Positions 10,792 to 63,398 of a DNA stretch of 64,000 bases are shown here, in pieces (position 1 is the first letter of the stretch; each line of letters starts with the position of its first letter). The notes under the pieces are model-generated. The model saw only the letters and a program-made list of their open reading frames with translations. It ran no database searches and was not told the DNA's origin. A program made the position numbers and the translations under genes. The stretch lies in the sequence record MZ574431.2. One strand, 5' to 3'.

Positions 10792-10828
10792 AAAACTGTT
10801 GACAGGCCTCCTCGTCGTCGCGTAAGCA
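10786..10828 (+). promoter_or_regulatory. conserved phage promoter with anti-SD arm
   Basis: TGCTAGAAAACTG-TTGACA-18-TAAGCA; spacer GGCCTCCTCG is complementary to CGAGGAGGCC (SD). Confidence 0.85.
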
Positions 10829-10856
10829 TGCGTGACATCAACCGAGGAGGCCCGTC

Positions 10857-11162
10857 TTGAGCGAACGCTACGAAGTCCGGTTCATCACGCCCGAAGGCGT
10901 GCCGAACCCAAAGGGTGCGAACACCTATAGCGACGCCGTGTTCGTCCGCGATTCGGCGGCCAAGATGGACCCGCCCTATGCCCTGGCCAATCCCGACATC
11001 GTGCGTTTCACCGAAACCGTGATCCCGCCGTCGGCCTATCCGCGCATGCTCGAACCGCTGACCGGCCTGGAGATCACTGAAATCCGTGCGGCCCTGCGGC
11101 GCGGCTGCGATGAGCGCACCGCCGCCCGCGCCCTGGCCCAGATGGGGATTTTCGATCGATGA
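10857..11162 (+). CDS. hypothetical protein
   Basis: GAGGAGG SD, TTG start. Confidence 0.75.
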   Translation: MSERYEVRFITPEGVPNPKGANTYSDAVFVRDSAAKMDPPYALANPDIVRFTETVIPPSAYPRMLEPLTGLEITEIRAALRRGCDERTAARALAQMGIFDR

Positions 11163-11614
11163 AGCTGAAGCGAGCCCTCAAGAGCGCCAGCGATCTGAAG
11201 CGCGGCCCCCGACTCGCCACGCCGGCCGAGCGCGCCAAGCTCGACCCGCTGGAACTGGCCAATGTCGTCGCCGCCGAGCGCCGGATGAAGGCCTACGATG
11301 ACCGGCGCGCGGCCGAACTCGGAGCCGCCAAGCGCTCGCCGTTGGACGCCTTCCGCGCCAATAAAGGCTACACCGGCGACGAGATGCCCGATAAGGGCCA
11401 GCGTGATGGATCGTGCAACCGCACCGCCTGTCAGCTTCCCCTGGCCGGCAACCGCCAGTTCTTCATGAAGGACCACTTCACCGGTGGGCGGCTGTACTAC
11501 TGCCCGGCCTGCGAGCGCAAGTTCAGTGAAGCCGATCGCCAGTTCCGCGAGGAGCGCCGCTGCCAGCCTGACGAGGACAACGAAAATCGCCCGCGCTGGG
11601 AGAGCTATCCATGA
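11159..11614 (+). CDS. Cys-rich putative Zn-binding protein
   Basis: KGQRDGSCNRTAC...YYCPAC. Confidence 0.7.
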   Translation: MKLKRALKSASDLKRGPRLATPAERAKLDPLELANVVAAERRMKAYDDRRAAELGAAKRSPLDAFRANKGYTGDEMPDKGQRDGSCNRTACQLPLAGNRQFFMKDHFTGGRLYYCPACERKFSEADRQFREERRCQPDEDNENRPRWESYP

Positions 11615-12069
11615 CCGAAGAACAACGCGTCGCCATCTTCAAAGCCTTCGCCGATCACTTGGCCCTCTATCCCACCCGGACCACGTTGGTCAGCTTCGGC
11701 GTCGTCGGTAGCGAAACCTACAGCCGAGATGAAGTGCGCCACATCCTGCGGGCGATGGAGTCCGATGGTCTGACGCGTAACGTCGAAGGCGCCTGGAAGC
11801 TGACGGCGGCCGGTGCTGTCTATCGCTACCTCTGCCAGAAGGCCGAGGGCGAGGAGTTCCGCCAGTCGGTCAGGATCAAGATTCGCAATCTGCGTTTCCT
11901 GCCGCAGTTCGACATCTATGAGGCGCGCCACATCCATGCCTCGCCGACGGAGCTACGCGCCCGCCAGTTGGTCGACGTCAACGGCCGCGAAGGCATCATG
12001 TGGCTCTCGGACGTCTACTATCCGCTCGGCGAACTGGCCGGCTGGAACCTCTCCAAGGCTCGCCCATGA
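11611..12069 (+). CDS. hypothetical protein
   Basis: ATGA overlaps. Confidence 0.7.
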   Translation: MTEEQRVAIFKAFADHLALYPTRTTLVSFGVVGSETYSRDEVRHILRAMESDGLTRNVEGAWKLTAAGAVYRYLCQKAEGEEFRQSVRIKIRNLRFLPQFDIYEARHIHASPTELRARQLVDVNGREGIMWLSDVYYPLGELAGWNLSKARP

Positions 12070-12878
12070 CCACCTTCCAGACCGTCAATCGTGAGTACAC
12101 GCCGGGGCTTCAGCAAGGCGTCGACTATGGCTCCAAGCCAATCATCATCCTGGCTCGCTCTCCCAAGGCCGCGTTGCTGTGGGTCGCCGGGAGTTCCTTC
12201 CGGTCCGGCATCGGCATGACGAGCTATTCGCCGGCCTACATGAAGGTGATCGAAGGCCGCAGCCTGAGTCCGTGGGGCCGCTATAAGACCCACGAGTTCG
12301 AGCGGCGTCAGCACGATCCTGCGGTGCGACTGTCCGGTGACCTGATCCTGGCCCGCGCCGAAAAGATCAACGAGTTCTTCGGCGCCGACGTCGCCAAGGC
12401 CCTGGCGGCCTCGGTCAAGGCCAAGAAGACCCTTCTGGTCGACGGCGGGGGCGAGCCGTTCAAGGCCGACGCCAAGACCGAACGCAAGCAGCGTGAGGCC
12501 GCCGCGCTCAAGGTCGCCCTAGCCAACAACGTCAACCGCAGGGTCGAGCCCGAGGGCGTTGCGTGCTGCCGCCAGTGCGGGATCAAGCTGCGGCCCTATC
12601 TGCAAACCCACTATCTGGAAGAGGGCCAGGAGCCGGCGACGTCCTTGGAGGAGCTTCAACGGCGTCACAACGCCGTCCAGGTCATCTCGACCAAGGCCGC
12701 CCCCTGGGCCGACCCGAGCAAGGCCCATCTGATCGGCGTCTACGAGACCTGGGATCGGGAGAGCTACCGCAATGGCGCCTACTTCTGCCATGACGACTGC
12801 GCCAAGGACTATGCCACCCGCGCCGTCGAGGCCTACGCACCCCTGCCGGTCATTCCGATGGAAGAAGACGAAGAGTGA
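12066..12878 (+). CDS. hypothetical protein with CxxC and FCxxxC
   Basis: ATGA overlap; stop inside promoter motif. Confidence 0.75.
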   Translation: MTTFQTVNREYTPGLQQGVDYGSKPIIILARSPKAALLWVAGSSFRSGIGMTSYSPAYMKVIEGRSLSPWGRYKTHEFERRQHDPAVRLSGDLILARAEKINEFFGADVAKALAASVKAKKTLLVDGGGEPFKADAKTERKQREAAALKVALANNVNRRVEPEGVACCRQCGIKLRPYLQTHYLEEGQEPATSLEELQRRHNAVQVISTKAAPWADPSKAHLIGVYETWDRESYRNGAYFCHDDCAKDYATRAVEAYAPLPVIPMEEDEE

Positions 12879-12915
12879 GAAACCGGTTGACGTGACGTTG
12901 GCCCTTGCCTAATGT
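12874..12915 (+). promoter_or_regulatory. conserved phage promoter
   Basis: AGTGAGAAACCGG-TTGACG-17-TAATGT; inverted repeat CGTGACGTT/AATGTCACG. Confidence 0.75.
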
Positions 12916-12941
12916 CACGATCGACAACACGGGAGACTTGC

Positions 12942-13313
12942 TTGACCATCAAGACCGTCATCGACGAGAACCGGAAGGCGCCTAAGCAGCTACGCCACTG
13001 GGCGCAGCGCCATGGCCTGTACCTCACCCGGTTCAAGAAGCATGGGTGGCGGGACTATCCGATCCTCAAGACGCGCAAGAGCCGCTTCACCGTCGGCTGT
13101 CGCGACCCCGAGCGCCACATTCGCGTACTGCCGCACCTGGGCCGGATGGACATCTGCGACGGTTATATGGATCGCTGGGCCAATTCCCTGGCCGCCAGCG
13201 TGCCTATGCCGCTGACCCAGGCTGAGTTCGACGGCGCCATTGGCGAACTCCTTGCCAAAGCTCGCAAGCGCGTGGCCGAGACCCATCCTGCCCCCGAGGC
13301 CGCCCATGGCTAG
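12942..13313 (+). CDS. hypothetical protein
   Basis: GGGAGA SD, TTG start. Confidence 0.7.
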   Translation: MTIKTVIDENRKAPKQLRHWAQRHGLYLTRFKKHGWRDYPILKTRKSRFTVGCRDPERHIRVLPHLGRMDICDGYMDRWANSLAASVPMPLTQAEFDGAIGELLAKARKRVAETHPAPEAAHG

Positions 13314-13677
13314 CGCAGCGGCGATCGCCGGCATCGAGGCTCACGGCCTGTCGTGGAAGTACAGGCTCCATGGCCTGCGCGCCCAGGACTTTGGCGCGCT
13401 CAAGGGCACGATCGAGTCGCCAGCCCACGCCGAGAAGGCCCAGGCTCACTGGGATCGCATCGTCGAGGCCGTTCGCCTTGCCGCCGGCCGCTACCAGGAC
13501 GATGCGACCCTGGTCGACAAGCTGATCGATTGGGCGGACGAAAACGCCACCGTCTCGATCGTCGACATCGACGTCGTCTACCAGGGCGACCCGGACGCCT
13601 GGATGGATTCGCGGTTCGAAGACCTCGAAGCCCTGTATGACATCCTCGACTATCACCGCGTGTTGGTCATCAACTGA
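13306..13677 (+). CDS. hypothetical protein
   Basis: GAGG SD; packed. Confidence 0.7.
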   Translation: MASAAAIAGIEAHGLSWKYRLHGLRAQDFGALKGTIESPAHAEKAQAHWDRIVEAVRLAAGRYQDDATLVDKLIDWADENATVSIVDIDVVYQGDPDAWMDSRFEDLEALYDILDYHRVLVIN

Positions 13678-13952
13678 TGCCCGCCCTGCTCGTCCGCGAT
13701 CAGGACTACGACGTCGTTGTCAGCCACGATACGGTGTGGGTGAACGACGCCGTGGGCATGTGCATCGGACGCTTCGGGCCGCGCGGCGTCGATGTCCACG
13801 CCAACGCCCAGGACCAGCTTGAAGGCGCCCATTGTCTGGCGTGCTGCAAGCGAACCGCCAATCCCCACGGCGACTGGGGCTTTTTCGTCAACAACATGCT
13901 GAATCACCATCGTATCCAGCTAACCGATCAGGACCGCCCGGAGCGCATCTGA
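13677..13952 (+). CDS. hypothetical protein
   Basis: TGATG coupling. Confidence 0.7.
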   Translation: MPALLVRDQDYDVVVSHDTVWVNDAVGMCIGRFGPRGVDVHANAQDQLEGAHCLACCKRTANPHGDWGFFVNNMLNHHRIQLTDQDRPERI

Positions 13953-13953
13953 C

Positions 13954-14325
13954 ATGAGCCTGCACCAGCAAATCGCCGACATCGTTGGCGCCAACGTGTC
14001 TTCCATGCAGATGCGGACGGAGTTCGAAAGCGCGGCCACCGACATCGTGGCGCTGCTCGGCCCGCACCTGGAACTCGCCCTCGTCGTCAAGGAAGTTGAG
14101 ACCGTCCTGCCCGGCTATGGCTGGCTAGTACGGGCTGATGAAAGCCAAGGCTATTTCGCCAACATCATGTCGCCAGACTATGTCTCGATCGTCGAGCAGT
14201 CCGGCGGCCGATTCGTCGACCGTTCCTTGGGCAAACGCTATCCGGCCTACGCGCCGACGCCGGCCCAGGCGCTCAAGACGGCGTTCGACGCGGTGATCGC
14301 CGCCGTCAAGGCCCAGGCCAACTGA
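13954..14325 (+). CDS. hypothetical protein
   Basis: Packed, GC3-rich. Confidence 0.7.
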   Translation: MSLHQQIADIVGANVSSMQMRTEFESAATDIVALLGPHLELALVVKEVETVLPGYGWLVRADESQGYFANIMSPDYVSIVEQSGGRFVDRSLGKRYPAYAPTPAQALKTAFDAVIAAVKAQAN

Positions 14326-14326
14326 C

Positions 14327-15520
14327 ATGCTGATCCCTGACGATCTGCGCATCCTGCGTGCGGCTTTCGAGGCCCTCAACCGCGACATCCGCTTCGTGGG
14401 CGGCTGGGTTCGCGCTTACATGCTGGGCGAGGCGCCCAAGGACATCGACCTCTGCACCGACGCCAGCATCGAGGAAATGAAGGAGATCGCCGAAGCCTGC
14501 GACGTGGTGCTTGATCTCTACCCCACGGGCGAGGAGCATGGCACCATGACCTTCCGCCTCGACAGCGGGCTCTACGAAATCACCTGCCTGCGTCAGGAAA
14601 CCGCCCACGATGGCCGGCGCGCAGACTGCGTGTTCGGGCAGGACTGGGACGCCGATTTGGCCCGGCGTGATCTGACGATCAACGCCATGGCCATGGACTT
14701 CGACGGGCGCCTCTACGATCCCCACGGCGGCGCCGTGGACCTCAAGGCCGGCCGCGTGCGCTTTGTCGGTGATCCGGTTGATCGGATGCGCGAGGACTAT
14801 CTGCGCATCTTGCGCTGGCTGCGCTTCCACGCCCGTTACTCCAAGGGACCGCTGGATTTTGACGCCCGCAACGCCGCCGAGGACCTTCGAGATGGTCTGG
14901 GGCCGATCAAGGCAGTCCGAACCAAGATCGGCTACACCGTCTCTCGCGAGCGGGTCTGGGACGAGATGAAGAAGATCATCGCCGGCCCGCGCTCGGCCTA
15001 CATCCTCTTCCAGATGGTTCGCATGCGCCTGGACGAGCCGCTGGGCTTTGATGGGATCGTCATCGGCGACCGCTACAACGCCGTCGTGCGCGAAACCGCC
15101 GATCCGATCGTGAGGCTGGTGGCGTTGTTCGAGGATACCCGCGACATCGAAGCCCTGGCGACCGATTGGAAATGGAGCCGCGAGGAGCGGAGCCGCGCGA
15201 TCTTCCTGTCCAAGTGCCTCCTGGCCGAAGATGTCGACGTTCTCAGCCTCGTCCTCATGGGCGTGTGCGACAAGGACGCCGCCGAGGACATCTGCATCCT
15301 GCGGGAGGATGCCGACCTTTTGGCCTACGTCCGCCGCTGGACGCCGCCAGAGTTTCCGGTAAAGGGTCAGGACCTCCTAGATTTAGGCATGAAGCCTGGG
15401 CCGCAGATGGGCGTTCACCTTGCCAGCCTCCGCCGCCTTTTCGCCGATCATCGCGGGGGCGTCACCAAAGAACAACTGCTCGCCACCCTGCGCCTGGAGA
15501 TAGACCTGTGCCCGTCTTGA
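14327..15520 (+). CDS. cca: class II tRNA nucleotidyltransferase (CCA-adding enzyme / poly(A) polymerase family)
   Basis: FVGGWVRAYMLG..KDIDL, EITCLR.E..DGRRA, DLARRDLTINAM, EDYLRILR motifs. Confidence 0.92.
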   Translation: MLIPDDLRILRAAFEALNRDIRFVGGWVRAYMLGEAPKDIDLCTDASIEEMKEIAEACDVVLDLYPTGEEHGTMTFRLDSGLYEITCLRQETAHDGRRADCVFGQDWDADLARRDLTINAMAMDFDGRLYDPHGGAVDLKAGRVRFVGDPVDRMREDYLRILRWLRFHARYSKGPLDFDARNAAEDLRDGLGPIKAVRTKIGYTVSRERVWDEMKKIIAGPRSAYILFQMVRMRLDEPLGFDGIVIGDRYNAVVRETADPIVRLVALFEDTRDIEALATDWKWSREERSRAIFLSKCLLAEDVDVLSLVLMGVCDKDAAEDICILREDADLLAYVRRWTPPEFPVKGQDLLDLGMKPGPQMGVHLASLRRLFADHRGGVTKEQLLATLRLEIDLCPS

Positions 15521-15834
15521 ATCCCATTCTCGAAACCGAGATCATTCGGATCATCGACAACAAATCGCCCCTTACGGACAAGCCGACCGTGATCGGAGCC
15601 GTCTCCTTCGTCGGAGGCATCCTCTCGGACCGCATCACCCATCTGATCGCCTTCCATGTCGAGGGGTGGGGTCTCAATCGCTGGGCCAACTTCACCTTCA
15701 ACATCGCCGGGCCGGACCCGCTGAACATGAGCGTGCAGAACCTCACCTACCGTGAGGACCTTCGTGTGCCGGGCACCGAGGTCTGGGACGAGGACGACCT
15801 GACCGCCCTGGCCTCCAAACTGCTCTATGTCTAG
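15508..15834 (+). CDS. hypothetical protein
   Basis: GGAG SD before GTG 15508. Confidence 0.65.
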   Translation: MPVLNPILETEIIRIIDNKSPLTDKPTVIGAVSFVGGILSDRITHLIAFHVEGWGLNRWANFTFNIAGPDPLNMSVQNLTYREDLRVPGTEVWDEDDLTALASKLLYV

Positions 15835-16060
15835 CACCGATGCGATCCACCTGCTGACCTCACCCAGTGGCGACAACATCTACCTCGCCGAGGAGGATGT
15901 CGATCCGTTCGCCACCTGGGACCCGCGCTGGAAGGTCGTTCGGTACGATCGGCTCCCCTGCGATGGTCGCATGAGGCAGTTCATTGGCTGGGCCGGTTAC
16001 CTCACCGACGCCAAGGTCCTGGCGCAGGCCAACCTGAGCAAGATGCAAGAATCCAGTTGA
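15827..16060 (+). CDS. hypothetical protein
   Basis: Stop is the TGA of TTGACA. Confidence 0.65.
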   Translation: MSSTDAIHLLTSPSGDNIYLAEEDVDPFATWDPRWKVVRYDRLPCDGRMRQFIGWAGYLTDAKVLAQANLSKMQESS

Positions 16061-16098
16061 CAAACGCCGGCGCCTTCTCCAGGGTGCCGGCGTTTTCA
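16044..16098 (+). promoter_or_regulatory. conserved promoter motif overlaid with terminator-like hairpin
   Basis: TGCAAGAATCCAG-TTGACA; 13-bp stem AAACGCCGGCGCC/GGTGCCGGCGTTT ending in a T4 run; weak -10 (CAGGGT). Confidence 0.65.
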
Positions 16099-16109
16099 AT
16101 GGAGGTTCC

Positions 16110-16370
16110 GTGAGCAATCGACGCGCCAGCTTGAACGGGGGCCAGACCAAGCCGCTGACACCCAGCGCCATCGCGGTGCTGCGTAGCCTGCGAGACTTCG
16201 GTCCGCGCCCGCGTCAGGAGATCAATCCTGGCCACAACGATCGGTTCGAGCGCGAAGACCTGACTGAGGTCTACCGGGACGTCAGCCCCTATGCGTCCCA
16301 CAAGGGCGCCTTGATCCCATTCGTGCGCATCGCCGAGGAAGGTCTGCGCACCCTGCGAGAAATCGGTTGA
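16110..16370 (+). CDS. hypothetical protein
   Basis: GGAGG SD; stop is the TGA of TTGACA. Confidence 0.7.
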   Translation: MSNRRASLNGGQTKPLTPSAIAVLRSLRDFGPRPRQEINPGHNDRFEREDLTEVYRDVSPYASHKGALIPFVRIAEEGLRTLREIG

Positions 16371-16372
16371 CA
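16354..16372 (+). promoter_or_regulatory. conserved promoter motif, -10 unclear
   Basis: TGCGAGAAATCGG-TTGACA; no TA at the 17-18 nt position. Confidence 0.5.
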
Positions 16373-16423
16373 CACCTGTCGGTATAGAGCACCTTCAGCG
16401 TCACAACTTCAACGGGGAGCCCC

Positions 16424-16855
16424 ATGCAGCCCAACGCCTCGAACGTCCGCAACGCGCTGATCCTCCTCAAGGAGGAGGACCCCAATCTGGCGCACCTGCT
16501 GGACCCGGTCATAAACGATCGCGGCTCGCTGAGCACCCTGGCCGAAATCCTCACCAAGACCTACGAGGCCGGCTACAACCGCCCGACCCTGACCAGCTAC
16601 GAAGTCACGGGCCACCGCACCGGCATCTTCCCGCTGGACATGCTGCGCCGGGGCGAGTGCTGGCCGACGACGACGGACGACGCCAACCTGATCGAAAAGC
16701 TCCTGACCCGCGAGGACGCCGTGATCGCCCGCCTGCCTAAGACGGTGACGATCCGCATCACCACCTGCGGCACCGAGTACGCCCAGATGAGCGTCATCGA
16801 CCGCTGGGCCTCGTTCGGCTGGACCGCGCGTGTTCTCCTGGAGGACGTGGCTTGA
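16424..16855 (+). CDS. hypothetical protein
   Basis: GGGGAG SD; VTG...FPLDMLR...CWP motif. Confidence 0.75.
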   Translation: MQPNASNVRNALILLKEEDPNLAHLLDPVINDRGSLSTLAEILTKTYEAGYNRPTLTSYEVTGHRTGIFPLDMLRRGECWPTTTDDANLIEKLLTREDAVIARLPKTVTIRITTCGTEYAQMSVIDRWASFGWTARVLLEDVA

Positions 16856-17124
16856 GCGCCTGGGTCAAGCAACCCATTTCCGAAGTCGGCGAGCGGCGTG
16901 AAATCCTGACCTCGATAGACCGTGAGTGGATCATTCTTCGCTGGGAAGATCGACAGGATCACGCCGGCCGGTGCGATACCGTCACGCGTCGTCCGGGTTG
17001 GACCGACGGGACCTACGATACCTCGGGGAGCATCGCCCATCATGGCTTGCTGTTGGTCTTCGAACCCACCCACTTCTACGCCCTGCCTGATGAAGGAGAA
17101 GACGATGCGCCGCAGCCTGCATAA
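16852..17124 (+). CDS. hypothetical protein
   Basis: GGAGG SD, TTGA overlap. Confidence 0.7.
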   Translation: MSAWVKQPISEVGERREILTSIDREWIILRWEDRQDHAGRCDTVTRRPGWTDGTYDTSGSIAHHGLLLVFEPTHFYALPDEGEDDAPQPA

Positions 17125-17536
17125 GACCGTCACCCTTTTTGGCCGGCAGTTCGGCCTGATCCAGGCCTACAGTAAGGCCCACGATCACTCGATCCTGCAT
17201 GGGAAGTCGACGATCGACCGTTCGGCCTGCCTCCGGGTCCTGGGCCTGGGCGTCGTCCTTCAGTCTCATCAGTCGACCAAGTCCTGGTGCGTGGCCCTGG
17301 GCCATGAATGGCTGTTCGACATCCAACTGAGCGGCACCTTCGCCGGCGCGCCCAAGCCCCCGCCCAATCCGTTCGTCAAGGACGCCCATCGCGCCTACGA
17401 GCCGCACATCGGCCTGTGCCTGATCCTTCTGGGCTCGGTCAGCAAGGCCCTGTGGGCCTGGGACGGCTTTGACGCCACCTCGGTGCTGGCGCCGGGGTCT
17501 GGTCGCGTGATGCGCTGGAGCCATCGCTTTGGCTAA
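17105..17536 (+). CDS. hypothetical protein
   Basis: AAGGAG SD before ATG 17105. Confidence 0.65.
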   Translation: MRRSLHKTVTLFGRQFGLIQAYSKAHDHSILHGKSTIDRSACLRVLGLGVVLQSHQSTKSWCVALGHEWLFDIQLSGTFAGAPKPPPNPFVKDAHRAYEPHIGLCLILLGSVSKALWAWDGFDATSVLAPGSGRVMRWSHRFG

Positions 17537-18752
17537 CCTCGACCTGCTCAACGAGTTCTGGACGCGCACCGAGCGCGAGGACGAGTTTCGCAACTATCGG
17601 GATTTCGTCCGCCAAGCGCGCGCCTTCACGCTCGACGATGATCTCGCCGGCGTGGTCAGCAAGCTGGGGGCGCGCGCCGACGACAAGACGCTCCTACGCT
17701 ACAAGCATGCCGCGCGTCTACCCTATCCCAAGATGTGGATAGAGGGCAGCTTCGAGCACCTGTTTGCCGACAACGGCTCCTCCCGGCACATGTTCGGCCG
17801 CCCCGAGCGCGTGGGCTGGATGCTCAAGCAAGGCGACGAGGTTTATGGCCCGGACGTGATCCAGGCCATCCGCGTCGCGCGCACTGACGGCGGCGGACCC
17901 CTGGCCGGCGGAGACCTGTTGGCGTCGGTCTACCCGGCCATCTTCCGCTGGTTCCCTGAAGGCCGCATCGACTACCGTCCCATCCGGCTGCGCGATGGCA
18001 ACGCCGCCGCCACGAAGTGGTTTGAGGAACTGGTGGCGGCCGAGCAGGACTTCAACAGCCATTCCGCCTCGATGCGGTTGGCCTGGACACCGAATGACCC
18101 AGGCGTCGAGCGCCAGATCGGCGTGGACGCCATGGAACTGCTGCGCCGCGCCAGTCAGGAGACCGACCGGCTCCCCCTGGCCGGGCAGGCGGTCGTGTCG
18201 ATGGAAGGGCGCGCGCTCGACGCCCTGGTCCGGCGCAACACCTACCCCACCTTGACCGAAGGCGTGAAGGAGCTACTGGGCGCGGCGCTCTATGATCAGA
18301 CCGGGGACCTTGGGCTCATCGTCTCGGCCCTGGCGCTGATCAACGAAATCCCCATCCGACGCATCGAGTACCAGCCGCGCGGCAGCGTTCGGGCTGGTGG
18401 TCGCATCCGCCCCTACATGCGCTCGACGATCGTCTCGATCGAGGTGCCCGCCAACCGCCGGCGCGTCAAGGACATCGAGAAGACCATCAAGCTTCGTGTC
18501 GAGGCCGCCAAGCGCGCCCGCCATGAGGTTCGCGGCCATTGGCTGACGTCCGACAAGCCGCCCCGCGCCGAAGAGACCCGCGAAGAAAAGCGTTGGGAGA
18601 CCTACTTCGATCGGCACGGCAAACTCCGCTGGCGGACCTGGATCGCCAACCACATGCGTGGCAGCGCCGAGATTGGCTTCGTTCAGCATGTCTACGAGGT
18701 CACGGAGAACCCGCGCAAGAAAGCTGTTGACAACTCCCTGGCAGGTCTCTAG
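17529..18752 (+). CDS. hypothetical protein with C-terminal RHEVRGHW...HMRG motif
   Basis: 407 aa; its last codons are the next promoter. Confidence 0.8.
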   Translation: MANLDLLNEFWTRTEREDEFRNYRDFVRQARAFTLDDDLAGVVSKLGARADDKTLLRYKHAARLPYPKMWIEGSFEHLFADNGSSRHMFGRPERVGWMLKQGDEVYGPDVIQAIRVARTDGGGPLAGGDLLASVYPAIFRWFPEGRIDYRPIRLRDGNAAATKWFEELVAAEQDFNSHSASMRLAWTPNDPGVERQIGVDAMELLRRASQETDRLPLAGQAVVSMEGRALDALVRRNTYPTLTEGVKELLGAALYDQTGDLGLIVSALALINEIPIRRIEYQPRGSVRAGGRIRPYMRSTIVSIEVPANRRRVKDIEKTIKLRVEAAKRARHEVRGHWLTSDKPPRAEETREEKRWETYFDRHGKLRWRTWIANHMRGSAEIGFVQHVYEVTENPRKKAVDNSLAGL

Positions 18753-18755
18753 CTA
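18714..18755 (+). promoter_or_regulatory. conserved phage promoter
   Basis: CGCAAGAAAGCTG-TTGACA-17-TAGCTA. Confidence 0.8.
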
Positions 18756-18784
18756 TGCAAGACGTTCAACAGGAAAGGCCCGCC

Positions 18785-19303
18785 ATGACCGAAGCTTCAG
18801 AAGGCAAGCCCCTCTACTACGCCGTCATCAGTGGCTCGGCGGAACATGCAGGCATGCCCGCTTCGATCGTGGCCGTCTTTGACGAGACCGCCAAGGCCGT
18901 CACCGGCCCCGCGATCGTCATCGAGCGCGACTACAACAACAACCTGACCCGCGTGACCAAGCCCGACGCTAACCCGATCTGGGGCAGGCGCACGGCCACG
19001 GGTCTGGTCCGAGCGTCCAAGAGCAACATCCTGGCGCGGTTCGACGACCGCGACAAGGCTGAAGCGGCGATGGAGGCGGCGTACAAGAACGCCAGAACCA
19101 GTATTGATGAGTTCGGCGACATCGCGGGCATCAAGACGCTGAACGAGGAGATCGGCGCCTTGGAAAAGCGCGTCAGGGAGCTTCGCGTCGAACTCCAGGA
19201 AAAGCGTCGGGTCTCGTGGGAAGACCGCTTCCAGAAGACCCTGGCCATTCTCACCGAAGGCGGTGCGACCGAGGTCTGGAAAGACCCCGAGGCGTCGACT
19301 TAA
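18785..19303 (+). CDS. hypothetical protein (coiled-coil C-terminus)
   Basis: AGGAAAGG upstream of ATG 18785. Confidence 0.75.
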   Translation: MTEASEGKPLYYAVISGSAEHAGMPASIVAVFDETAKAVTGPAIVIERDYNNNLTRVTKPDANPIWGRRTATGLVRASKSNILARFDDRDKAEAAMEAAYKNARTSIDEFGDIAGIKTLNEEIGALEKRVRELRVELQEKRRVSWEDRFQKTLAILTEGGATEVWKDPEAST

Positions 19304-19356
19304 AGCCACCTTCTTCTCCGGCCCCTGGCCGCCGCATCATTTATCGATAGGACCCC

Positions 19357-19986
19357 ATGTACCCCAAGCACCACCTCATTCTCCACGGGATCGAAGACGC
19401 CGGCATGCAAGGCATGGTCCGCGCCATTCTCGGCCCGGACTACTCCTCGATCATCGTCTCCGAGAACATGATCCACCAGGAGTGGAACAACCCCAAGGCC
19501 GTGGCTGTCCTTCTCCAGCCTGTCTATGACGACGAAAACGACCGCCTGGGCGTGATCGTTGGCAAGCGCGCCATCGCGCCGCAGATCGGCGAGTGGGCGA
19601 TCCCCGGCGGTTTCGTGCAGAACTTCGGCCGATCGATCGAAGAAGAAGCCGTCACCGAGTTCGAGCAGGAGATGGGCATCGCCGGCCTCACCGCCGACAC
19701 CGTGCGCATGTGGCACAGCTACCCCACGCCCAACGGCCGCATCCTGTTCTTCTGTGTCAACGGCCAGACCCTGAAGGCCCGCGAGATCAAGGAGGTCCTG
19801 GGCGCAGGCAAGGGCGACGGCGAGATGAGCGACTTCAAGGTCGCCTATGAGCCGTTCCAACTGGCCTTCCCGTTCCACACCATCGTCATGGAGAAGTTCT
19901 TCCGGTCCTTCCAGGCCGGCGCCAAGGAATTCCCCATGCCCGGCTATGGTCTGATCGCCTCTCGGGGCCATCTGCCGCAACGCTAG
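19357..19986 (+). CDS. Nudix hydrolase (degenerate box)
   Basis: WAIPGGFVQNFGRSIEEEAVTEFEQEMGI; C-terminal LAFPFH. Confidence 0.8.
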   Translation: MYPKHHLILHGIEDAGMQGMVRAILGPDYSSIIVSENMIHQEWNNPKAVAVLLQPVYDDENDRLGVIVGKRAIAPQIGEWAIPGGFVQNFGRSIEEEAVTEFEQEMGIAGLTADTVRMWHSYPTPNGRILFFCVNGQTLKAREIKEVLGAGKGDGEMSDFKVAYEPFQLAFPFHTIVMEKFFRSFQAGAKEFPMPGYGLIASRGHLPQR

Positions 19987-19995
19987 GAGAAGCCT

Positions 19996-20184
19996 ATGCC
20001 CACCACCCGCCTTCGTAGCCCGGAGATGGTCGACAAGATCATCGCCGACTTCAAGAAGACCCAGAACCTGGACGCTACCGCCAAGAAGTTCAACGCGTCC
20101 GTTTCGGGCATCCGAGCGGTCCTGCGCTGCCATGCGCCGGACCTGCTTTCCGAGCGCCGGCAAGCCCAGGCTGACAAGAGCTAA
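19996..20184 (+). CDS. small HTH protein
   Basis: LDATAKKFNASVSGIRAVLR; AGGAG SD. Confidence 0.65.
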   Translation: MPTTRLRSPEMVDKIIADFKKTQNLDATAKKFNASVSGIRAVLRCHAPDLLSERRQAQADKS

Positions 20185-20189
20185 AATTC

Positions 20190-20232
20190 TACAAGAAAAC
20201 GGTTGACACTCCTCGGCGCGCTCGCCTAAGGT
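20190..20232 (+). promoter_or_regulatory. conserved phage promoter with anti-SD arm
   Basis: TACAAGAAAACGG-TTGACA-18-TAAGGT; CTCCTCGGCG pairs with CGCCGAGGAG. Confidence 0.85.
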
Positions 20233-20259
20233 GCGCCCATAGCCGCCGAGGAGAGACAG

Positions 20260-21093
20260 ATGTCGATCACCATGCCCGCCCAACAAGACGCCGAAGGCAA
20301 CTGGCCCGAGGGCGCGTGGCTCAATGTCGAGCCGGTCTACGAAGGTGGTTACAGCACCTCGTACGGTTACGACCACAAACTCAAGCGCGACACCTACAAG
20401 TTCAGTGACTTCGACCCGGCGCTCGGTCGCTTCGTCGAAGTCCAGCCGATGTTCGGCCCCTATCGCCGCGACCGGATCGTCGGCTATCGCCCTTCCGCTT
20501 TCGCCGACCGCGTGATGGCCCAGACCTACAAGGGCTGCGTCCTGAGCCTGGGCGAGGTCAACGGCTACCACGACAGCGACTTCTACGCGATCGTCTGGGA
20601 CGAGGCCGACCAAGCAACGCGTCGCATCGAGTACGCCTCGACGCGTGGCTGGACCTACGACTGCGGCGCCTCGATCGACGCGACTGATGAGGTCAAGGCC
20701 GCCTACGCCGCCTATGAAGAGGCCCAGTATCGGCGCCGGGTCGAGGAGCGTGAACGCGCCACCCAGGCCAAGCGCGAGGAAGTCGCCAAGGCCCTGGCGG
20801 TCGACATCGCCGCCATCGCGCGCCTCGAAAGCGCCTACGGTCGTATCGACCCGCGCCCGATCGCCACGAGCGGTCGCTACAACAACCACTATTCGTCGCT
20901 CTCGAAGTCGTTCGGCTTCACGCGAGAGTCCAACACCCTGGACAGCATCATCGCCTTGGCGATCAGCGGCAAGAGCGGCCGGCTGCGCAACGCCTTCCGC
21001 AAGAAGATGGCCGAGCAGGTCCTGGCCTGGATGGTCGACCCCACCCCGCAGTACCCCACGCCCCTGTCCCGCAAACAACTCCAATACATCTGA
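20260..21093 (+). CDS. hypothetical protein
   Basis: GAGGAG SD; strong codon bias. Confidence 0.85.
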   Translation: MSITMPAQQDAEGNWPEGAWLNVEPVYEGGYSTSYGYDHKLKRDTYKFSDFDPALGRFVEVQPMFGPYRRDRIVGYRPSAFADRVMAQTYKGCVLSLGEVNGYHDSDFYAIVWDEADQATRRIEYASTRGWTYDCGASIDATDEVKAAYAAYEEAQYRRRVEERERATQAKREEVAKALAVDIAAIARLESAYGRIDPRPIATSGRYNNHYSSLSKSFGFTRESNTLDSIIALAISGKSGRLRNAFRKKMAEQVLAWMVDPTPQYPTPLSRKQLQYI

Positions 21094-21104
21094 AGGAGGT
21101 CAGC

Positions 21105-22052
21105 TTGATCGACATCAATCACCCCGAGCCCGTCACCCACGGCAACTTCGCCCTGATGTGGTCGGGCGGCGCCTTCGAGGTCTTCGAACTGCGCAGCCGC
21201 TTCCAGGACGGCGAGGTTCAAGACCCGATCCTGCGCTTCCACGCCATGGAGGTCACCGACCCCTATCCGATCATCCTGAACCATCGCGAAATCCTCGCCC
21301 GCTACGACGACAAGGACGAGGCGCTGTACTGCGCCGAGGCCGCTCGCGCCGCCTGGGCGAGCGGCGAGGATGCCCTGAAAGAGCTTCAAGACGAGTTCGA
21401 CCGCAAGAAGAAGTTCCTCACCGAGCGTCGCGATCGCTATGCTCGTGATCTGGCCATCGCCGGCCGCGAGAAGATCGACGCCGGCGAGATCAAGCCGATG
21501 ACCATCCCGCTCACGGATCGCGAGACCGATCAGGCCATGGAGGCCTCCTATCGCACCGACGCGGCCGTCGAAAGCGCCCTGCGCAACATCACCGAGGTCC
21601 TGCCGCCGGTCAGCGAGTTCCCTGGCATCCCGGACTCCTGGTACGAGAAGCCCGTCTGCAAGGTCGAGTGGGCCAGCGAGGACGGCGATCCCTCCGTCGG
21701 CATCCCCGGCTGGCACGGGCTCGTCCTCAAGCCCGACCAGTCCGGTACGATCCTGGGCGAAATCCTCGCCGATCTGGCGCAGGACCTCGGCGACGCCCGC
21801 GTCATCCCCGGCGCCGACCACTCGCGCCTGGAGAACTGGGAGCGCCTGGAAGCGGCCGAAGCCGTCCTCAAGCTGCTGACCGACGTCCTGGAAGACCAGA
21901 CCTCGACGCACATGCGCTTCGAGACCAGCCGCGCCGCCCTCGACGAGCGCGTTCGTGCCCTGCTGGGCTACATGAAGGTCAACGCCGAAAAGCTCCTGGA
22001 CGCCCTGGCCGTCTGGGAAGACATCGTCGCCACCCAGAAGGCCACCGCATGA
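21105..22052 (+). CDS. hypothetical protein
   Basis: AAGGAGG SD, TTG start. Confidence 0.8.
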   Translation: MIDINHPEPVTHGNFALMWSGGAFEVFELRSRFQDGEVQDPILRFHAMEVTDPYPIILNHREILARYDDKDEALYCAEAARAAWASGEDALKELQDEFDRKKKFLTERRDRYARDLAIAGREKIDAGEIKPMTIPLTDRETDQAMEASYRTDAAVESALRNITEVLPPVSEFPGIPDSWYEKPVCKVEWASEDGDPSVGIPGWHGLVLKPDQSGTILGEILADLAQDLGDARVIPGADHSRLENWERLEAAEAVLKLLTDVLEDQTSTHMRFETSRAALDERVRALLGYMKVNAEKLLDALAVWEDIVATQKATA

Positions 22053-22567
22053 CCGCGATCCCTAAACCTACCAACAGCCTCCCGCGCGTCCTGGAGAAGG
22101 TGCGCCACGCCAAGGCCATGCTGGATGCCATGCCGGCATCGGGCGTGGCCAACCTCCCAGACACCCGCCACGCCATTGGCGCCGAGGTGCTCGTCAGTCT
22201 GGTGATCGCCTACAATCTGCTCGGCGAGACGGCGGGCCTTGAGGCGATGTCCCTGGCCATCTCCTCGGACACCTCGCGCAAGCAGCCGCCGGTCCTGCTG
22301 AACGGCGTCGACAAGCGCATTGCGGCCGGCAACCTGACGCCCGACTGCATGGCGATGGCCAACCAGGACAGGTCCATCAAGGAATATTTCGAGGCGATCA
22401 CCGGCCTGCTGCTCGACCCCTACTTCTACCAGCGCACCCGCGACGGCGAAAAGCCGCTGCATGACGCCGCGCTCTGGGGCCAACGCAAGGCCGCGTTCCT
22501 GATCCTGGACCTGATCGAGCACTTCATGCACATCCCCGATCGGATCAAAGGCTCCTTGAGCTACTAA
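22049..22567 (+). CDS. hypothetical protein
   Basis: ATGA overlap start. Confidence 0.75.
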   Translation: MTAIPKPTNSLPRVLEKVRHAKAMLDAMPASGVANLPDTRHAIGAEVLVSLVIAYNLLGETAGLEAMSLAISSDTSRKQPPVLLNGVDKRIAAGNLTPDCMAMANQDRSIKEYFEAITGLLLDPYFYQRTRDGEKPLHDAALWGQRKAAFLILDLIEHFMHIPDRIKGSLSY

Positions 22568-22568
22568 G

Positions 22569-22610
22569 TGCAAGAAAGCTGTTGACACACGTGTTGGGAG
22601 GCCCTAAAGG
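22569..22610 (+). promoter_or_regulatory. conserved phage promoter with anti-SD arm
   Basis: TGCAAGAAAGCTG-TTGACA-17-TAAAGG; GTCTCCTC pairs with GAGGAGAC. Confidence 0.85.
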
Positions 22611-22640
22611 TCTCCTCACCCGCAACGAGAGGAGACTCCG

Positions 22641-23009
22641 GTGACCACCGAAGCTGACATCAAGGCCAAGCCGTTCATCCTGACCAACGACGGCGCCGGC
22701 CTCATCCGCATCTGGGAAGTCACCGGCCTCAAGCAGCGCCTGCCGGGTGAGCCGGGTGTGTTCGAGATCGCTATGAAGGACACCGACGAGAACAACTCGA
22801 CGACGATCCGCAGCGACGACTTCGACACCATCTACGCGACCGCCGCGACCCTGGCCCAGGCGCAGATCGCCCGTCGGGCCTCGCGCCTCGCCTGGGACAG
22901 CCATCAGCAGACGATCGCCTCGATCGAGATGACCCTGGCCAACGCCAAGAACAACCAGTGGCTGGACTGCAAGACCGTCACGCGTCTCATCGCCGAGGCC
23001 GCGATCTAA
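22641..23009 (+). CDS. hypothetical protein
   Basis: GAGGAG SD. Confidence 0.8.
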   Translation: MTTEADIKAKPFILTNDGAGLIRIWEVTGLKQRLPGEPGVFEIAMKDTDENNSTTIRSDDFDTIYATAATLAQAQIARRASRLAWDSHQQTIASIEMTLANAKNNQWLDCKTVTRLIAEAAI

Positions 23010-23010
23010 C

Positions 23011-24948: not shown

Positions 24949-24971
24949 TGCGGACAACGAAAGGAGACCCG

Positions 24972-26608: not shown

Positions 26609-26627
26609 CAGCAAAGGGAGACACCCC

Positions 26628-44775: not shown

Positions 44776-44796
44776 CGCCTGAACCTGGAGTTAACC

Positions 44797-50784: not shown

Positions 50785-50821
50785 GAATCCTGTTGACAAC
50801 CTAGGGTCATGCGCCTATATG
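50780..50821 (+). promoter_or_regulatory. conserved phage promoter
   Basis: GGTGAGAATCCTG-TTGACA-17-TATATG. Confidence 0.75.
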
Positions 50822-50860
50822 CCGCACCAAGTCATCAATCTTGGCACGGAGGCATGGATC

Positions 50861-53893: not shown

Positions 53894-53941
53894 TGCAAGA
53901 AAACTGTTGACACCCCTTCTGGACCTCGGCTAGAAGGGGTG
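53894..53941 (+). promoter_or_regulatory. conserved phage promoter spanned by a palindrome
   Basis: TGCAAGAAAACTG-TTGACA-18-TAGAAG; CACCCCTTCT/AGAAGGGGTG. Confidence 0.85.
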
Positions 53942-53965
53942 CATCAACAGTCAATGGAGACACCC

Positions 53966-54560: not shown

Positions 54561-54932
54561 ATGGCCAAGCAACGTTGGATCAAGGACCGCTTCGGCGACA
54601 GCCGCCGCGCCCCGATGACTATCCATGACGCCATCGTCTTGATCCTGGAGCACATGCAAAGCTCGGTGGCGCTGATCGCGCGCACGGACTATCGCAGCGT
54701 CCATAACCCCCAAGGCCTGCCCGAGATGTCGATGGCTTCGACAAAGGTCTATGGGACGCGCTACTGGCAAGCGGCCGAGCGCCTGATCAAGGAAGGCGCC
54801 GTGGTCGCGGCCAACGGCAGCCCCGACTGCCGCGACGACTTCCGTAACCCCTTATACATGGTTGCGGGGCCTAACTACGCCAAGGCGGTGAAAACCTACC
54901 TCGGTGATGTCGGTGTGCAAGAAAACAGTTGA
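54561..54932 (+). CDS. hypothetical protein
   Basis: AAGGA SD; stop is the TGA of TTGACA. Confidence 0.7.
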   Translation: MAKQRWIKDRFGDSRRAPMTIHDAIVLILEHMQSSVALIARTDYRSVHNPQGLPEMSMASTKVYGTRYWQAAERLIKEGAVVAANGSPDCRDDFRNPLYMVAGPNYAKAVKTYLGDVGVQENS

Positions 54933-54958
54933 CACACTCTCCTCGTCCGGGCTAGGTT
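54916..54958 (+). promoter_or_regulatory. conserved phage promoter with anti-SD arm
   Basis: TGCAAGAAAACAG-TTGACA-18-TAGGTT; TCTCCTCGT pairs with ACGAGGAGA. Confidence 0.85.
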
Positions 54959-54986
54959 CGAAGCCTGACGGAACGAGGAGACACCG

Positions 54987-56018: not shown

Positions 56019-56048
56019 GGGTTCAACAGCAACCGAGGAGCCCAGCGC

Positions 56049-57754: not shown

Positions 57755-57833
57755 TGGCGGCCCCGGTGGGGATCGAACCCACGACCTCTGCTTTCGGAAA
57801 ACAGCGCTCTCAATTCCGCTGAGCTACGGGGCC
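57755..57833 (-). tRNA. tRNA-Arg (anticodon CCG), CCA encoded
   Basis: Manual cloverleaf: GGCCCCG/CGGGGCC acceptor, GCTC/GAGC D-stem, loop TTCCGAA, GTGGG-TTCGATC-CCCAC, discriminator G, CCA. Confidence 0.92.
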
Positions 57834-57835
57834 AT

Positions 57836-57910
57836 TGGCATGCCCGGCCGGAATCAAACCGGCATCCGGCGCTTAGAAGGCGCTTGCTCTCTTCGTTGAG
57901 CTACGGGCAC
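57836..57910 (-). tRNA. tRNA-Arg (anticodon UCU), CCA encoded
   Basis: Manual cloverleaf: GTGCCCG/CGGGCAT, GCTC/GAGC, loop CTTCTAA, GCCGG-TTTGATT-CCGGC, discriminator G, CCA. Confidence 0.88.
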
Positions 57911-62020: not shown

Positions 62021-62364
62021 TGCAAGTTCAGCACATCTCCCTCAAGGGCGGCCTGGGCGACGCCCGCAACGAGCAGTTCCAGCGGCTGAGCCCGATGGTC
62101 CCCGCCGGCGTCCCCAGTCCCAACCTCCAGGCGATCATCACCAACCTGGAGTCGGGTAAACTCGGCACGCTGCGCGTCCTGGCCGACAAGATCGAGAACG
62201 GCGCCGCCACCGAGGACGAAGCCGAACTCGACGCCCTCTACGATGGTCTGCCGCTGCTGGTGGCCTATGTCGAGGACCTGATCGGCATGTGCCTGCGCCG
62301 CGAGGAAGCCCTGGCCGAGTGCGACGTGCGCGTCGGTCGCCCGATCACCGATGACGAGGTCTAG
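62020..62364 (+). CDS. hypothetical protein
   Basis: TGATG coupling. Confidence 0.7.
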   Translation: MQVQHISLKGGLGDARNEQFQRLSPMVPAGVPSPNLQAIITNLESGKLGTLRVLADKIENGAATEDEAELDALYDGLPLLVAYVEDLIGMCLRREEALAECDVRVGRPITDDEV

Positions 62365-62367
62365 TCT

Positions 62368-62691
62368 GTGAACGAGGACGTTGCCGAGCAGCGCCTGAGC
62401 GAGTGGGGCGCTTACGATGCGCGGCGAGGGCGTAGCCCCTCGCAGGATCATCCCGCGTATCGCGAGGCTTATGAGCGCGCCGCGCATCAAGCCTTCGCCA
62501 ATCTCGACCCGTGCCCTTTCTGCCGTAAGCCGCTGCACATCATCGGCACGGAAAGCCAGGACCTCACGGTCATTCAGTGCATGACCAAGACCTGTCCCGG
62601 TGACGTTCGGATCGCCCTGACTGACCCTGACAAGCACAAGCGCTGGGTGCTTCTGGCCCACGGCTGGAACAACCAGGACACGGTGGCATGA
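62368..62691 (+). CDS. Lar-like (restriction alleviation-type) Zn-ribbon protein
   Basis: LDPCPFC...IQC..KTC...WN pattern. Confidence 0.5.
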   Translation: MNEDVAEQRLSEWGAYDARRGRSPSQDHPAYREAYERAAHQAFANLDPCPFCRKPLHIIGTESQDLTVIQCMTKTCPGDVRIALTDPDKHKRWVLLAHGWNNQDTVA

Positions 62692-62987
62692 TCGACGAGA
62701 CCGACATCGTCTACCGCCTGCGCAAGCGGGCCGAAATCCGCCGCCAGATACCGGGACGCAAGTCGGTCCAGGAGGGCAAGCCCGATCGCATGGCCGACCT
62801 CCTCGACGAGGCGGCCGACGAGATCATGCGCTTCCGGCGTCTGGACTTTGAGGAACGGTGTCGCCAGTGGCTCGCCAATGGGGGCGCAGAAGAGTTGGCC
62901 AAGGCGCTGGCCCGCGCCAAGCAGACGAGCGACGAGTTCGCCCGTTCGACCGCTGTGAGGCCCGAGACGCTGCACGAACGCTACTAG
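62688..62987 (+). CDS. conserved phage hypothetical protein
   Basis: VYRLRKRAEIRRQIPGRKSVQEGKPDRMADLLDEAADEI. Confidence 0.8.
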   Translation: MIDETDIVYRLRKRAEIRRQIPGRKSVQEGKPDRMADLLDEAADEIMRFRRLDFEERCRQWLANGGAEELAKALARAKQTSDEFARSTAVRPETLHERY

Positions 62988-62999
62988 GGGAGGCACGAC

Positions 63000-63329
63000 A
63001 TGAGCACTGAGGACCTGGGTGGCCCGGCCGTCTACATCGACCAGATGGACCCCAACAATCGCTGGTACGATCCCAAGCTGGCGAAGGACGTCTCGGCTGT
63101 GGACCTGGGGCGATGGCCTGTCGACCTGACGCAGTGGCGGGAATGGAACCGCAACAGCGCCTTTGAGCCGGGGCGCTATGGCTATCAGCGCAAGGCGGCC
63201 GACGAGCGCAGCGAGACGGGGCGGCGCCGCGTCGATGAAACGCTGTTCAACAAGGCCTGCTACTATGCCGCCATGGCCACCTATATCGTGGCGATCACCG
63301 CCGTCCTGATGCTGGTGTTCCGCGCGTAA
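63000..63329 (+). CDS. hypothetical protein with C-terminal TM anchor
   Basis: GGAGG SD; hydrophobic C-terminus. Confidence 0.75.
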   Translation: MSTEDLGGPAVYIDQMDPNNRWYDPKLAKDVSAVDLGRWPVDLTQWREWNRNSAFEPGRYGYQRKAADERSETGRRRVDETLFNKACYYAAMATYIVAITAVLMLVFRA

Positions 63330-63366
63330 GAAAGCTGTTGACAGGCCATGTAGGCTCCTCTATCAC
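63325..63366 (+). promoter_or_regulatory. conserved phage promoter with anti-SD arm
   Basis: CGTAAGAAAGCTG-TTGACA-17-TATCAC; GGCTCCTC pairs with GAGGAGCC. Confidence 0.85.
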
Positions 63367-63398
63367 CGTGACAACGCAAGCGACACGAGGAGCCCGAG

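Follow-up and report, generated by a model that had tools for sequence, protein, structure and literature searches.

Promoter spacers complementary to downstream Shine-Dalgarno regions in the small-gene array of Caulobacter phage J4

The long transcripts of phage T4 genes e, soc, 49 and I-TevI, and of mobE of Aeromonas phage Aeh1, carry a helix that masks the ribosome-binding site, and the proximal promoter starts transcription inside that helix (PMC3014915). In T4, the proximal promoter is late or middle and phage-specific, and the purpose is temporal, i.e., early RNA is silent and late RNA active. Here we describe a related arrangement in the window, the stretch of 64,000 nucleotides (nt) extending from position 186001 to 250000 of Caulobacter phage J4 record MZ574431.2. 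At six loci in the window, a segment of 7–10 nt located between the -35 element and the predicted transcription start (+1) is the complement of the Shine-Dalgarno (SD) region of the cassette's first gene, ~30 nt downstream. The complementarity is real, promoter-specific and locus-specific. The six anti-SD loci, named by the first position of -35 in the window, are 10799, 20203, 24919, 54929, 63338 and 22582, the last being less convincing.

The resemblance to T4 and Aeh1 has several parts. The SD or start codon pairs with an upstream segment, as folding predicts at 10799, 20203, 24919, 54929 and 63338 and not at 22582. The predicted proximal start falls between the arms, so that only longer transcripts would carry the inhibitory structure. 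There are multiple loci per genome, and related phages have similar structures. Unlike T4, J4 places the 5′ arm in the -35/-10 spacer of a complete host-type promoter, and the promoters farther upstream belong to this class too; the device is present at no fewer than six loci, in the company of promoters with embedded terminators. A further difference is that the J4 device is known here from sequence and folding alone, and a T4-style difference in temporal class is not seen.

Promoters of the array and their complementary arms

J4 is a jumbo phage of the genus Bertelyvirus, with a genome of 312 kb, that grows on C. vibrioides CB15. The window agrees with its record at 100% identity over positions 10000–24000. 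The window contains ~150 small hypothetical genes, nearly all co-directional on the + strand, and sits within a ~90-kb array of such genes, or ~200 kb when the terminal repeat and a minus-strand array are counted. Host-type promoters punctuate the array every 1–5 kb. The window has 22 copies of GTTGACA, where 4.4 would be expected, and 16 of these sites show the extended consensus AAGAAA-n-CTGTTGACA, a spacing of 17–18 nt, and cTAnnn. An SD and annotated start codon are located 52–68 nt past -35 at consensus promoters. The cTAnnn element is presumably the -10 of the Caulobacter housekeeping type (sigma-73 consensus) rather than TATAAT. A built-in E. coli-style sigma-70 scan found no promoters because the -10 is of this type.

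The promoter definition, fixed beforehand, was the regular expression A[GA]A[AT]-N4-6-TTGACA, which matches 46 sites in the whole J4 genome. With the wider -35 TTGAC[AT] and the requirement of a usable downstream start, the terminal repeat holds 19 promoters and the rest of the genome 27. The promoters directly adjoin the gene before them or overlap its end, and the upstream stop codon lies 0–62 nt before -35 or inside the promoter. Thus, the gp288 stop codon (10789–10791) is within the AAGAAA-like upstream element of the gp289 promoter, and the TGA stop of gp383 lies inside the -35 of the gp384 promoter. In the 10–30 kb segment of the window, terminator-like sites were not above chance. Since promoters abut genes and terminator-like sites are not in excess, RNA from upstream promoters is expected to read through the cassette promoters.

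The preliminary description of this sequence listed five arm pairs, and every one proved exact when re-read in the sequence (Table 1). It also placed the 5′ arm in the promoter spacer. This holds at four loci, where the arm lies between TTGACA and a -10-like TAnnnn; at 22610, the arm instead follows the -10 (22605–22610) and adjoins the predicted +1. With the consensus geometry, which puts the predicted +1 ~7 nt beyond -10, the 5′ arms are upstream of +1 at all six loci. Four weaker cases had been named as well. The one at 24927 stands, as GGCTCCT pairs with AGGAG-a-CC with one bulge, the SD is unpaired with a probability of 0.07, and the relatives retain pairing there. A genuine hairpin (-29.2 kcal/mol, z -2.7) exists at 33654, downstream of a non-canonical promoter with only a poor -35-like TTGCGC; the corresponding position in phage CcrSC lacks an intergenic gap. 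The case at 55996 found no support (fold z -0.26), and the pair claimed at 696 is missing from the minimum free energy (MFE) structure. We also considered whether 10805–10814, whose reverse complement is SD-like, serves an antisense gene, and rejected this because reading of the sequence shows no minus-strand start codon downstream.

Folded from the predicted +1, own-transcript leaders show no structure (z -0.2 to +1.3) and leave the SD ~0.6–0.7 unpaired; the corresponding values for read-through RNA are in Table 1. When nine cassette-first proteins were compared with Pfam, gp384 alone was recognisable (Acyl_transf_3), and Pfam thus reveals no functional theme among the masked genes.

Table 1. 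Promoters, complementary arms and hairpins in the window, with predicted folds of read-through RNA and the unpaired probability of the SD on read-through RNA and on the own transcript
Feature	Coordinates (strand)	Elements	Fold, kcal/mol	z	SD unpaired, read-through / own
gp289 promoter (10799)	10799–10828 (+)	-35 TTGACA 10799–10804; 18-nt spacer; -10-like TAAGCA 10823–10828	-35.3	-5.4	0.00 / 0.60
gp289 5′ arm (anti-SD) GGCCTCCTCG	10805–10814 (+)	10 nt; spacer, immediately past -35			
gp289 3′ arm CGAGGAGGCC	10843–10852 (+)	10 nt; SD region of gp289; TTG start at 10857			
gp308 promoter (20203)	20203–20232 (+)	-35 20203–20208; -10-like TAAGGT 20227–20232	-29.1	-3.0	0.00 / 0.64
gp308 5′ arm CTCCTCGGCG	20209–20218 (+)	10 nt; within spacer			
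gp308 3′ arm CGCCGAGGAG	20244–20253 (+)	10 nt; SD region of gp308; ATG 20260			
gp311 promoter and leader (22582)	22582–22643 (+)	-35 22582–22587; -10-like TAAAGG 22605–22610; GTG 22641			
gp311 decoy GGGAGGCC	22596–22603				
gp311 anti-SD GTCTCCTC	22610–22617	8 nt			
gp311 SD arm GAGGAGAC	22629–22636	8 nt			
gp317 promoter and leader (24919)	24919–24974 (+)	-35 24919–24924; -10-like TAAGAC 24943–24948; ATG 24972	-19.9	-1.8	0.07 / 0.63 (0.81 with fixed-window test)
gp317 5′ arm GGCTCCT	24925–24931				
gp317 SD arm AGGAGACC	24962–24969	one bulged A			
gp384 (Acyl_transf_3 acyltransferase) promoter (54929)	54929–54958 (+)	-35 54929–54934; -10-like TAGGTT 54953–54958	-24.4	-1.8	0.00 / 0.72
gp384 5′ arm TCTCCTCGT	54938–54946 (+)	9 nt; within spacer			
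gp384 3′ arm ACGAGGAGA	54973–54981 (+)	9 nt; SD region of gp384; ATG 54987			
gp405 promoter and leader (63338)	63338–63401 (+)	-35 63338–63343; -10-like TATCAC 63361–63366; GTG 63399	-21.0	-0.95	0.00 / 0.64
gp405 5′ arm GGCTCCTC	63353–63360	8 nt; adjoining -10			
gp405 SD arm GAGGAGCC	63387–63394	8 nt			
Weaker case before gp335	33654–33707 (+)	CCGTGTC 33654–33660 pairs with GACACGG 33690–33696; ATG 33705			
gp300 promoter with built-in intrinsic terminator	16057–16112 (+)	-35 16057–16062; U-run TTTT 16093–16096; GTG 16110			
gp300 terminator 5′ arm AACGCCGGC	16063–16071	in spacer			
gp300 terminator 3′ arm GCCGGCGTT	16086–16094				
gp322 whole-promoter hairpin	26566–26612 (+)	-35 and spacer pair with region past -10; SD free	-37.8	-6.1	
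gp381 whole-promoter hairpin	53903–53951 (+)	CTGTTGACACCCCTTCT pairs with AGAAGGGGTG..TCAACAG; SD free	-35.6	-5.7	

Excess over chance and persistence in related phages

For the test of perfect complementarity, the geometry was set in advance, with an upstream part of -35+4..+34 and an SD part of start-20..+4. Within the window, the best perfect matches measure 10, 10, 9 and 8 nt. Five of the 27 promoters that are not in the terminal repeat have a perfect complement of at least 8 nt, against 0.28 expected from dinucleotide shuffles of the upstream part, a number reached in 0 of 2000 shuffles; for at least 7 nt, the count is six against 1.0 expected. The preliminary description had named shuffled promoters as the yardstick, and by that measure complementarity is clearly the commoner in the real ones. 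Its further claim, that complementarity is kept locus by locus, is also upheld: arms match their own SD better than the SDs of other loci (permutation P=0.003, in the window and also for all 27). The matches are concentrated at the first genes of cassettes. That is, a complement of at least 8 nt is found at 5 of 25 promoter-first genes versus 5 of 561 other J4 SD-plus-start contexts (Fisher test, 2e-5).

A thermodynamic test on annotated starts points the same way. An SD was scored as buried when unpaired <0.1 in a 74-nt read-through context, and as open when unpaired >0.4 in a 29-nt own-transcript context. The SD is buried on read-through RNA and open on the own transcript at 8 of 17 promoter-first genes versus 2 of 117 internal genes (Fisher test, 5e-7). 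At the promoters outside the terminal repeat, an SD unpaired <0.1 was found in 9 of 27 cases; 2.85 were expected when the spacer and -10 were shuffled, with a maximum of 7 in 100 shuffles. The energy of the whole fold did not differ between promoter regions and internal gene starts (P=0.2). The promoter-region signal is specific to SD burial and not to overall fold energy. When duplexes straddling the transcription start site (TSS) were compared between own and other loci, the result was P=0.0005 in CcrSC, 0.0045 in CcrBL9 and only P=0.06 in J4, the last partly because the fixed +1 cut splits the whole-promoter hairpins.

These counts bear on whether the matches are a by-product of composition, in which strong GAGGAG-type SDs meet GC- and C/T-rich spacers and no selection is involved. 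Shuffled spacers still bury the SD in ~10% of cases, pairs taken from different loci reach at least 7 nt in 8.5% of cases, the permutation test gives no significance for promoters outside the window taken by themselves, and a sample from phage Colossus shows no excess. Against this stand perfect arms of 10, 10, 9, 8 and 8 nt where 0.28 were expected, the difference in SD burial between promoter-first and internal genes, and the persistence of pairing at the same loci despite spacer turnover. We consider a purely compositional origin very improbable.

The persistence is seen in CcrSC and CcrBL9, relatives at ~75% DNA identity. Protein-based locus searches gave these two as the only close relatives, limiting covariation to three lineages, and IMG/VR held no further close relative. 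An IMG/VR scan with a 14-base promoter core as the query gave mainly unrelated single matches and was set aside. In the literature searched, promoter-embedded SD-masking arms of these phages are not described. For 14 orthologous promoters of J4, CcrSC and CcrBL9, SD-burial status correlates between J4 and CcrSC (rho 0.65, P 0.012) and between J4 and CcrBL9 (rho 0.66, P 0.010). The spacers themselves are often unrecognisable between phages (2–10/17 identical), including those at 20203 (5/17 for CcrSC against J4) and 24919 (8/17).

The loci differ in how the pairing is kept. At 10799, CcrSC shares both arms with J4 unchanged, CcrBL9 has them moved by one pair, and the loop has diverged. At 20203, the J4 arm is replaced; reading of the sequences shows an 11-pair stem including 3 G.U pairs in CcrSC and a bulged stem in CcrBL9, and per-sequence folds bury the SD fully in all three phages. 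At 22582, CcrSC and CcrBL9 carry GGGGTCTC before -10, pairing with GAGACCCC, whereas the J4 arm comes after -10. At 24919, CcrSC has GGCCTC just past -35 and CcrBL9 has GGCCTCCT just before -10, each matching its own changed SD flank. At 54929, TCCTCGA of CcrBL9 pairs with TCGAGGA, an inner pair having changed from T-A to A-T, and the CcrSC pairing is weaker. No orthologue of 63338 (gp405) was found in the CcrSC and CcrBL9 pieces examined. MAFFT alignments of 20203 and 54929, given to RNAalifold, did not reveal the SD stems, since indels shift the arms between phages, and per-sequence folds were used instead. Of the covariation that the preliminary description named as a check, what survives is burial that persists locus by locus; strict covariation is thin, in three lineages. 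Selection for pairing is likely, to judge from the sequences compared.

The same comparison speaks to a DNA-level element, in which the inverted repeats would be operators or cruciform sites regulating the promoter. The repeats flank -10, and certain spacers (26570, 50793) show strong conservation and a likeness to protein sites, e.g., CTAGG-n3-CCTAG. The arms, however, differ at every locus, so that there is no common operator, and from one relative to the next they change place inside the promoter. At 20203, the stem of CcrSC depends on G.U pairs, and these do not occur in duplex DNA. The G.U pairs and the moving arms indicate RNA pairing rather than a DNA operator, and we regard an element acting on DNA as highly doubtful.

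Proposed silencing of read-through RNA and its rivals

We suggest that RNA from an upstream promoter, carrying both arms, would fold into a hairpin of about -20 to -35 kcal/mol in which the SD is buried, and that the first gene would in consequence stay silent on read-through RNA. RNA begun at the cassette's own +1 would lack the 5′ arm and have a ~22-nt unstructured leader, from which the first gene would be translated. Translational silencing of read-through messenger RNA (mRNA), of the type described for T4 e, soc, 49 and I-TevI, is in our judgement the best reading, and we hold it with moderate confidence; the TSS position, read-through, the hairpin in vivo and the translational effect are what we infer. 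A further step would be that an untranslated first gene leaves the read-through RNA open to Rho, giving transcriptional insulation, a benefit that we purely infer. Cassettes packed without space for terminators would in this way remain separate transcription units.

Promoters of the same family also sit within hairpins of other kinds. The gp300 promoter contains a stem of -36 kcal/mol (z -5.7) with its U-run at ~+1, which qualifies as an intrinsic terminator. The stem covaries among J4, CcrSC and CcrBL9, with 2 pairs altered on both sides and 3 pair types at one position. At position 164566 of the J4 record (- strand), the promoter spacer is likewise the 5′ arm of a terminator with a U-run, and the arm, GGCTCCAG, can also pair with the SD. 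Both sites match the known case of an intrinsic terminator overlapping the promoter downstream of it, i.e., a GC-rich stem and U-run with the promoter's own +1 inside or after the stem, where upstream RNA would stop and own RNA would not. The anti-SD loci differ from such terminators in having no U-run and in using the SD itself as 3′ arm; their effect would be on translation, and termination would be unaffected. At gp322 (promoter 26570) and gp381 (promoter 53907), the whole promoter lies in a hairpin and the SD is free. The gp322 spacer (CTAGG-n3-CCTAG) is nearly identical in J4, CcrSC and CcrBL9, and hairpins analogous to that of gp381 occur in both relatives. The orthologues of 16367 in CcrSC and CcrBL9 have a 9-bp hairpin, TGATCGATA/TATCGATCA, that does not touch the SD.

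These terminators and SD-sparing hairpins support the idea of a different treatment of upstream-derived RNA at cassette borders, and they feed a rival explanation as well. In that rival, the hairpins mark boundaries that serve the processing or stability of RNA, or its transcription, and do not silence translation, the SD being just a convenient G-rich partner. They could be cleavage sites for ribonuclease (RNase) III or another enzyme, protect the 3′ end of the upstream message, or cause pausing or termination on read-through RNA. The SD-sparing hairpins (26566–26612, 53903–53951, 16367 orthologues) and the true terminators (16057, covarying; 164566, minus strand) around same-family promoters are consistent with it, and indicate that SD masking is only one form of a broader theme, the TSS inside a hairpin. 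The early-region RNase III hairpins of T7, too, are stable hairpins at the junctions of co-transcribed phage cassettes. T7 RNase III sites, unlike the J4 hairpins, are longer imperfect duplexes of ~20 bp or more, not built into promoters and usually not paired with an SD. The outer stems of the anti-SD loci are only 8–10 bp, plus inner stems, which is short for RNase III, an enzyme that takes about two turns of nearly continuous double-stranded RNA; the hairpins at 26566 and 53903 reach ~20 bp. Moreover, no U-run follows the SD arms of the five listed pairs, relocated arms in the relatives still aim specifically at the SD, and the enrichment appears in the test that scores SD burial itself, against both internal genes and shuffles. 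A boundary role in place of translational silencing is unlikely in our estimate, though the strongest of the rivals.

A broader proposal combines these hairpins. A promoter inside a hairpin might be a general architecture of cassette boundaries in these jumbo phages, with three interchangeable flavours acting only on upstream-derived RNA: a terminator (16057; 164566, minus strand), an SD mask (10799, 20203, 24919, 54929, 63338) or a long perfect hairpin (26570, 53907), the SD masks insulating transcription as well, through Rho. We offer this as a speculative and rather unlikely generalisation.

Masking of a downstream cistron's SD by upstream RNA is also known from translational coupling in polycistronic mRNAs. 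Applied to J4, coupling would mean that the SD stays masked until the ribosome ending the upstream gene melts the 5′ arm, and that read-through RNA yields the first gene's product only if the upstream gene is itself translated. The upstream stop is 6 nt before the arm at 54929 (inside -35) and 14 nt before it at 10799, and the promoters with an upstream open reading frame (ORF) running through the spacer (18727, 55990) have no anti-SD arms, as coupling would allow. In coupling systems, however, the mask is inside the translated upstream ORF and is opened by ribosomes, whereas the J4 arm is mostly 14–43 nt beyond the stop. At 20203, 22582, 24919 and 63338, the stop is 23–43 nt upstream of the arm, a distance that, to judge from ribosome footprints in general, exceeds the reach of a terminating ribosome. 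Coupling is improbable at most loci for this reason, 54929 and 10799 being the exceptions, and as an account of the arms we give it little credence.

Several results weigh against translational silencing of read-through RNA, or restrict it. The rule is not systematic, contrary to what the preliminary description had proposed: predicted SD burial is found at 9 of the 27 promoters outside the terminal repeat, and perfect arms of 7–8 nt or more at 5–6 of them, leaving about two thirds without pairing. The observation in that description is therefore borne out for a subset of promoters, and its interpretation in part. No SD is buried at the 19 terminal-repeat promoters. Burial is seen at 4 of 20 promoters in CcrSC and 4 of 21 in CcrBL9, which is weakly above shuffles (P 0.15 and 0.08), and the own-versus-other SD permutation for the 11 J4 promoters outside the window is not significant alone (P=0.23). 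In the MFE structure of J4 gp311, the anti-SD pairs with a decoy rather than with the SD, which is left 0.52 unpaired, and the whole-region fold is unremarkable both here (z -0.13) and at 63338 (z -0.95). RNAalifold found no covariation at 10799 and 20203. Swapping arms between phages changes the energy from -19.3 to -17.7 kcal/mol, a mean cost of only ~1.6, and given this modest effect, strong covariation is not claimed. A T4-style early-to-late switch is not evident. Upstream and cognate promoters have one common consensus, and late-type promoters were not identified; because the consensus is shared, the temporal rationale of T4 is missing and the benefit is unclear. Searches of the literature on Bertelyvirus, CcrSC and CcrBL9 yielded no promoter, TSS, transcript or translation study.

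A general rule across the subfamily was considered and is not borne out by counts in Colossusvirus samples, with 1 of 7 against 1.28 expected in Colossus and 2 of 6 against 0.32 in CcrPW.

In jumbo phages, small co-directional genes number in the hundreds and promoters stand tight against the gene before them; the separation of their cassettes is largely unexplained. If silencing of read-through RNA is true, the T4 device would have evolved separately in a phage of an alphaproteobacterium, built on the spacer of a normal host-type promoter, and would be employed several times in one genome alongside promoter-embedded terminators. It would provide a compact model for cassette insulation, and perhaps a part for designing synthetic operons. 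Should the hairpins act otherwise, they are still a well-supported sequence regularity whose use is unexplained.

Other promoters and genes of the array

The leader of gp311 has an additional element. The decoy in its spacer is SD-like, pairs with the anti-SD (GGTCTCC) and has no counterpart in CcrSC or CcrBL9. The decoy, anti-SD and SD are, from the sequence, three mutually exclusive elements that might form a switch.

The terminal repeat, positions 1–24723 of the J4 record and outside the window, has 19 promoters of the AAGAAAGCTGTTGACA type that are a separate class. They have their own conserved spacer, GCAT...CCCATGCGACAAAG, which is nearly invariant, with a 5-bp inverted repeat (cGCAT-n9-ATGCG) followed by ACAAAG, and no SD masking. 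This spacer looks like a common operator or the mark of a distinct temporal class. The gp377 promoter (50793–50840) in the window has a spacer, ACCTAnnnTCATGCGCCTATATGCCGCA, that resembles the terminal-repeat class (CATGCG) and, unlike most spacers, is kept in J4, CcrSC and CcrBL9 (15/17). The gp377 leader in CcrSC and CcrBL9 has an additional GCATCC/GGATGC hairpin.

A TCAAC or CAAC(A/G) motif recurs at ~+1 to +15 of most promoters (e.g., 10839–10843, 18769–18775, 53941–53947, 56030–56036). CAAC near the predicted start is found at 18 of the 27 promoters outside the terminal repeat and 13 of the 19 inside. TCAAC reads as GTTGA, the -35 core, on the other strand, and it pairs with -35 at several loci. 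The motif may be an initiation-region signal or a pairing partner.

At promoters 18727 and 55990, the upstream ORF crosses -35 and stops within the spacer/-10 region. The lack of arms at both fits the idea that a translated spacer cannot mask, although with n=2 this is anecdotal.

The 430–745 segment is a divergent control region with minus-strand promoters at 438 and 708. A weak plus-strand -35-like TTGTCA (702–707) overlaps the reverse complement of the 708 site, and the spacer of the 438 promoter contains the palindrome TGTCAC-n5-GTGACA. Two transfer RNA genes for arginine (tRNA-Arg), at 57758–57910 on the - strand, lie in the middle of the plus-strand array and are conserved in CcrSC and CcrBL9. 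Finally, the 460-nt gap between gp362 and gp363 (within 44746–45477) holds an ORF with ATG at 44797, a GGAG SD and TTGACA upstream at 44746. The ORF stays in frame from 44797 to 45477, ending exactly at the start of gp364, and the annotated gp363 (45194–45493, in another frame) may be a miscall.

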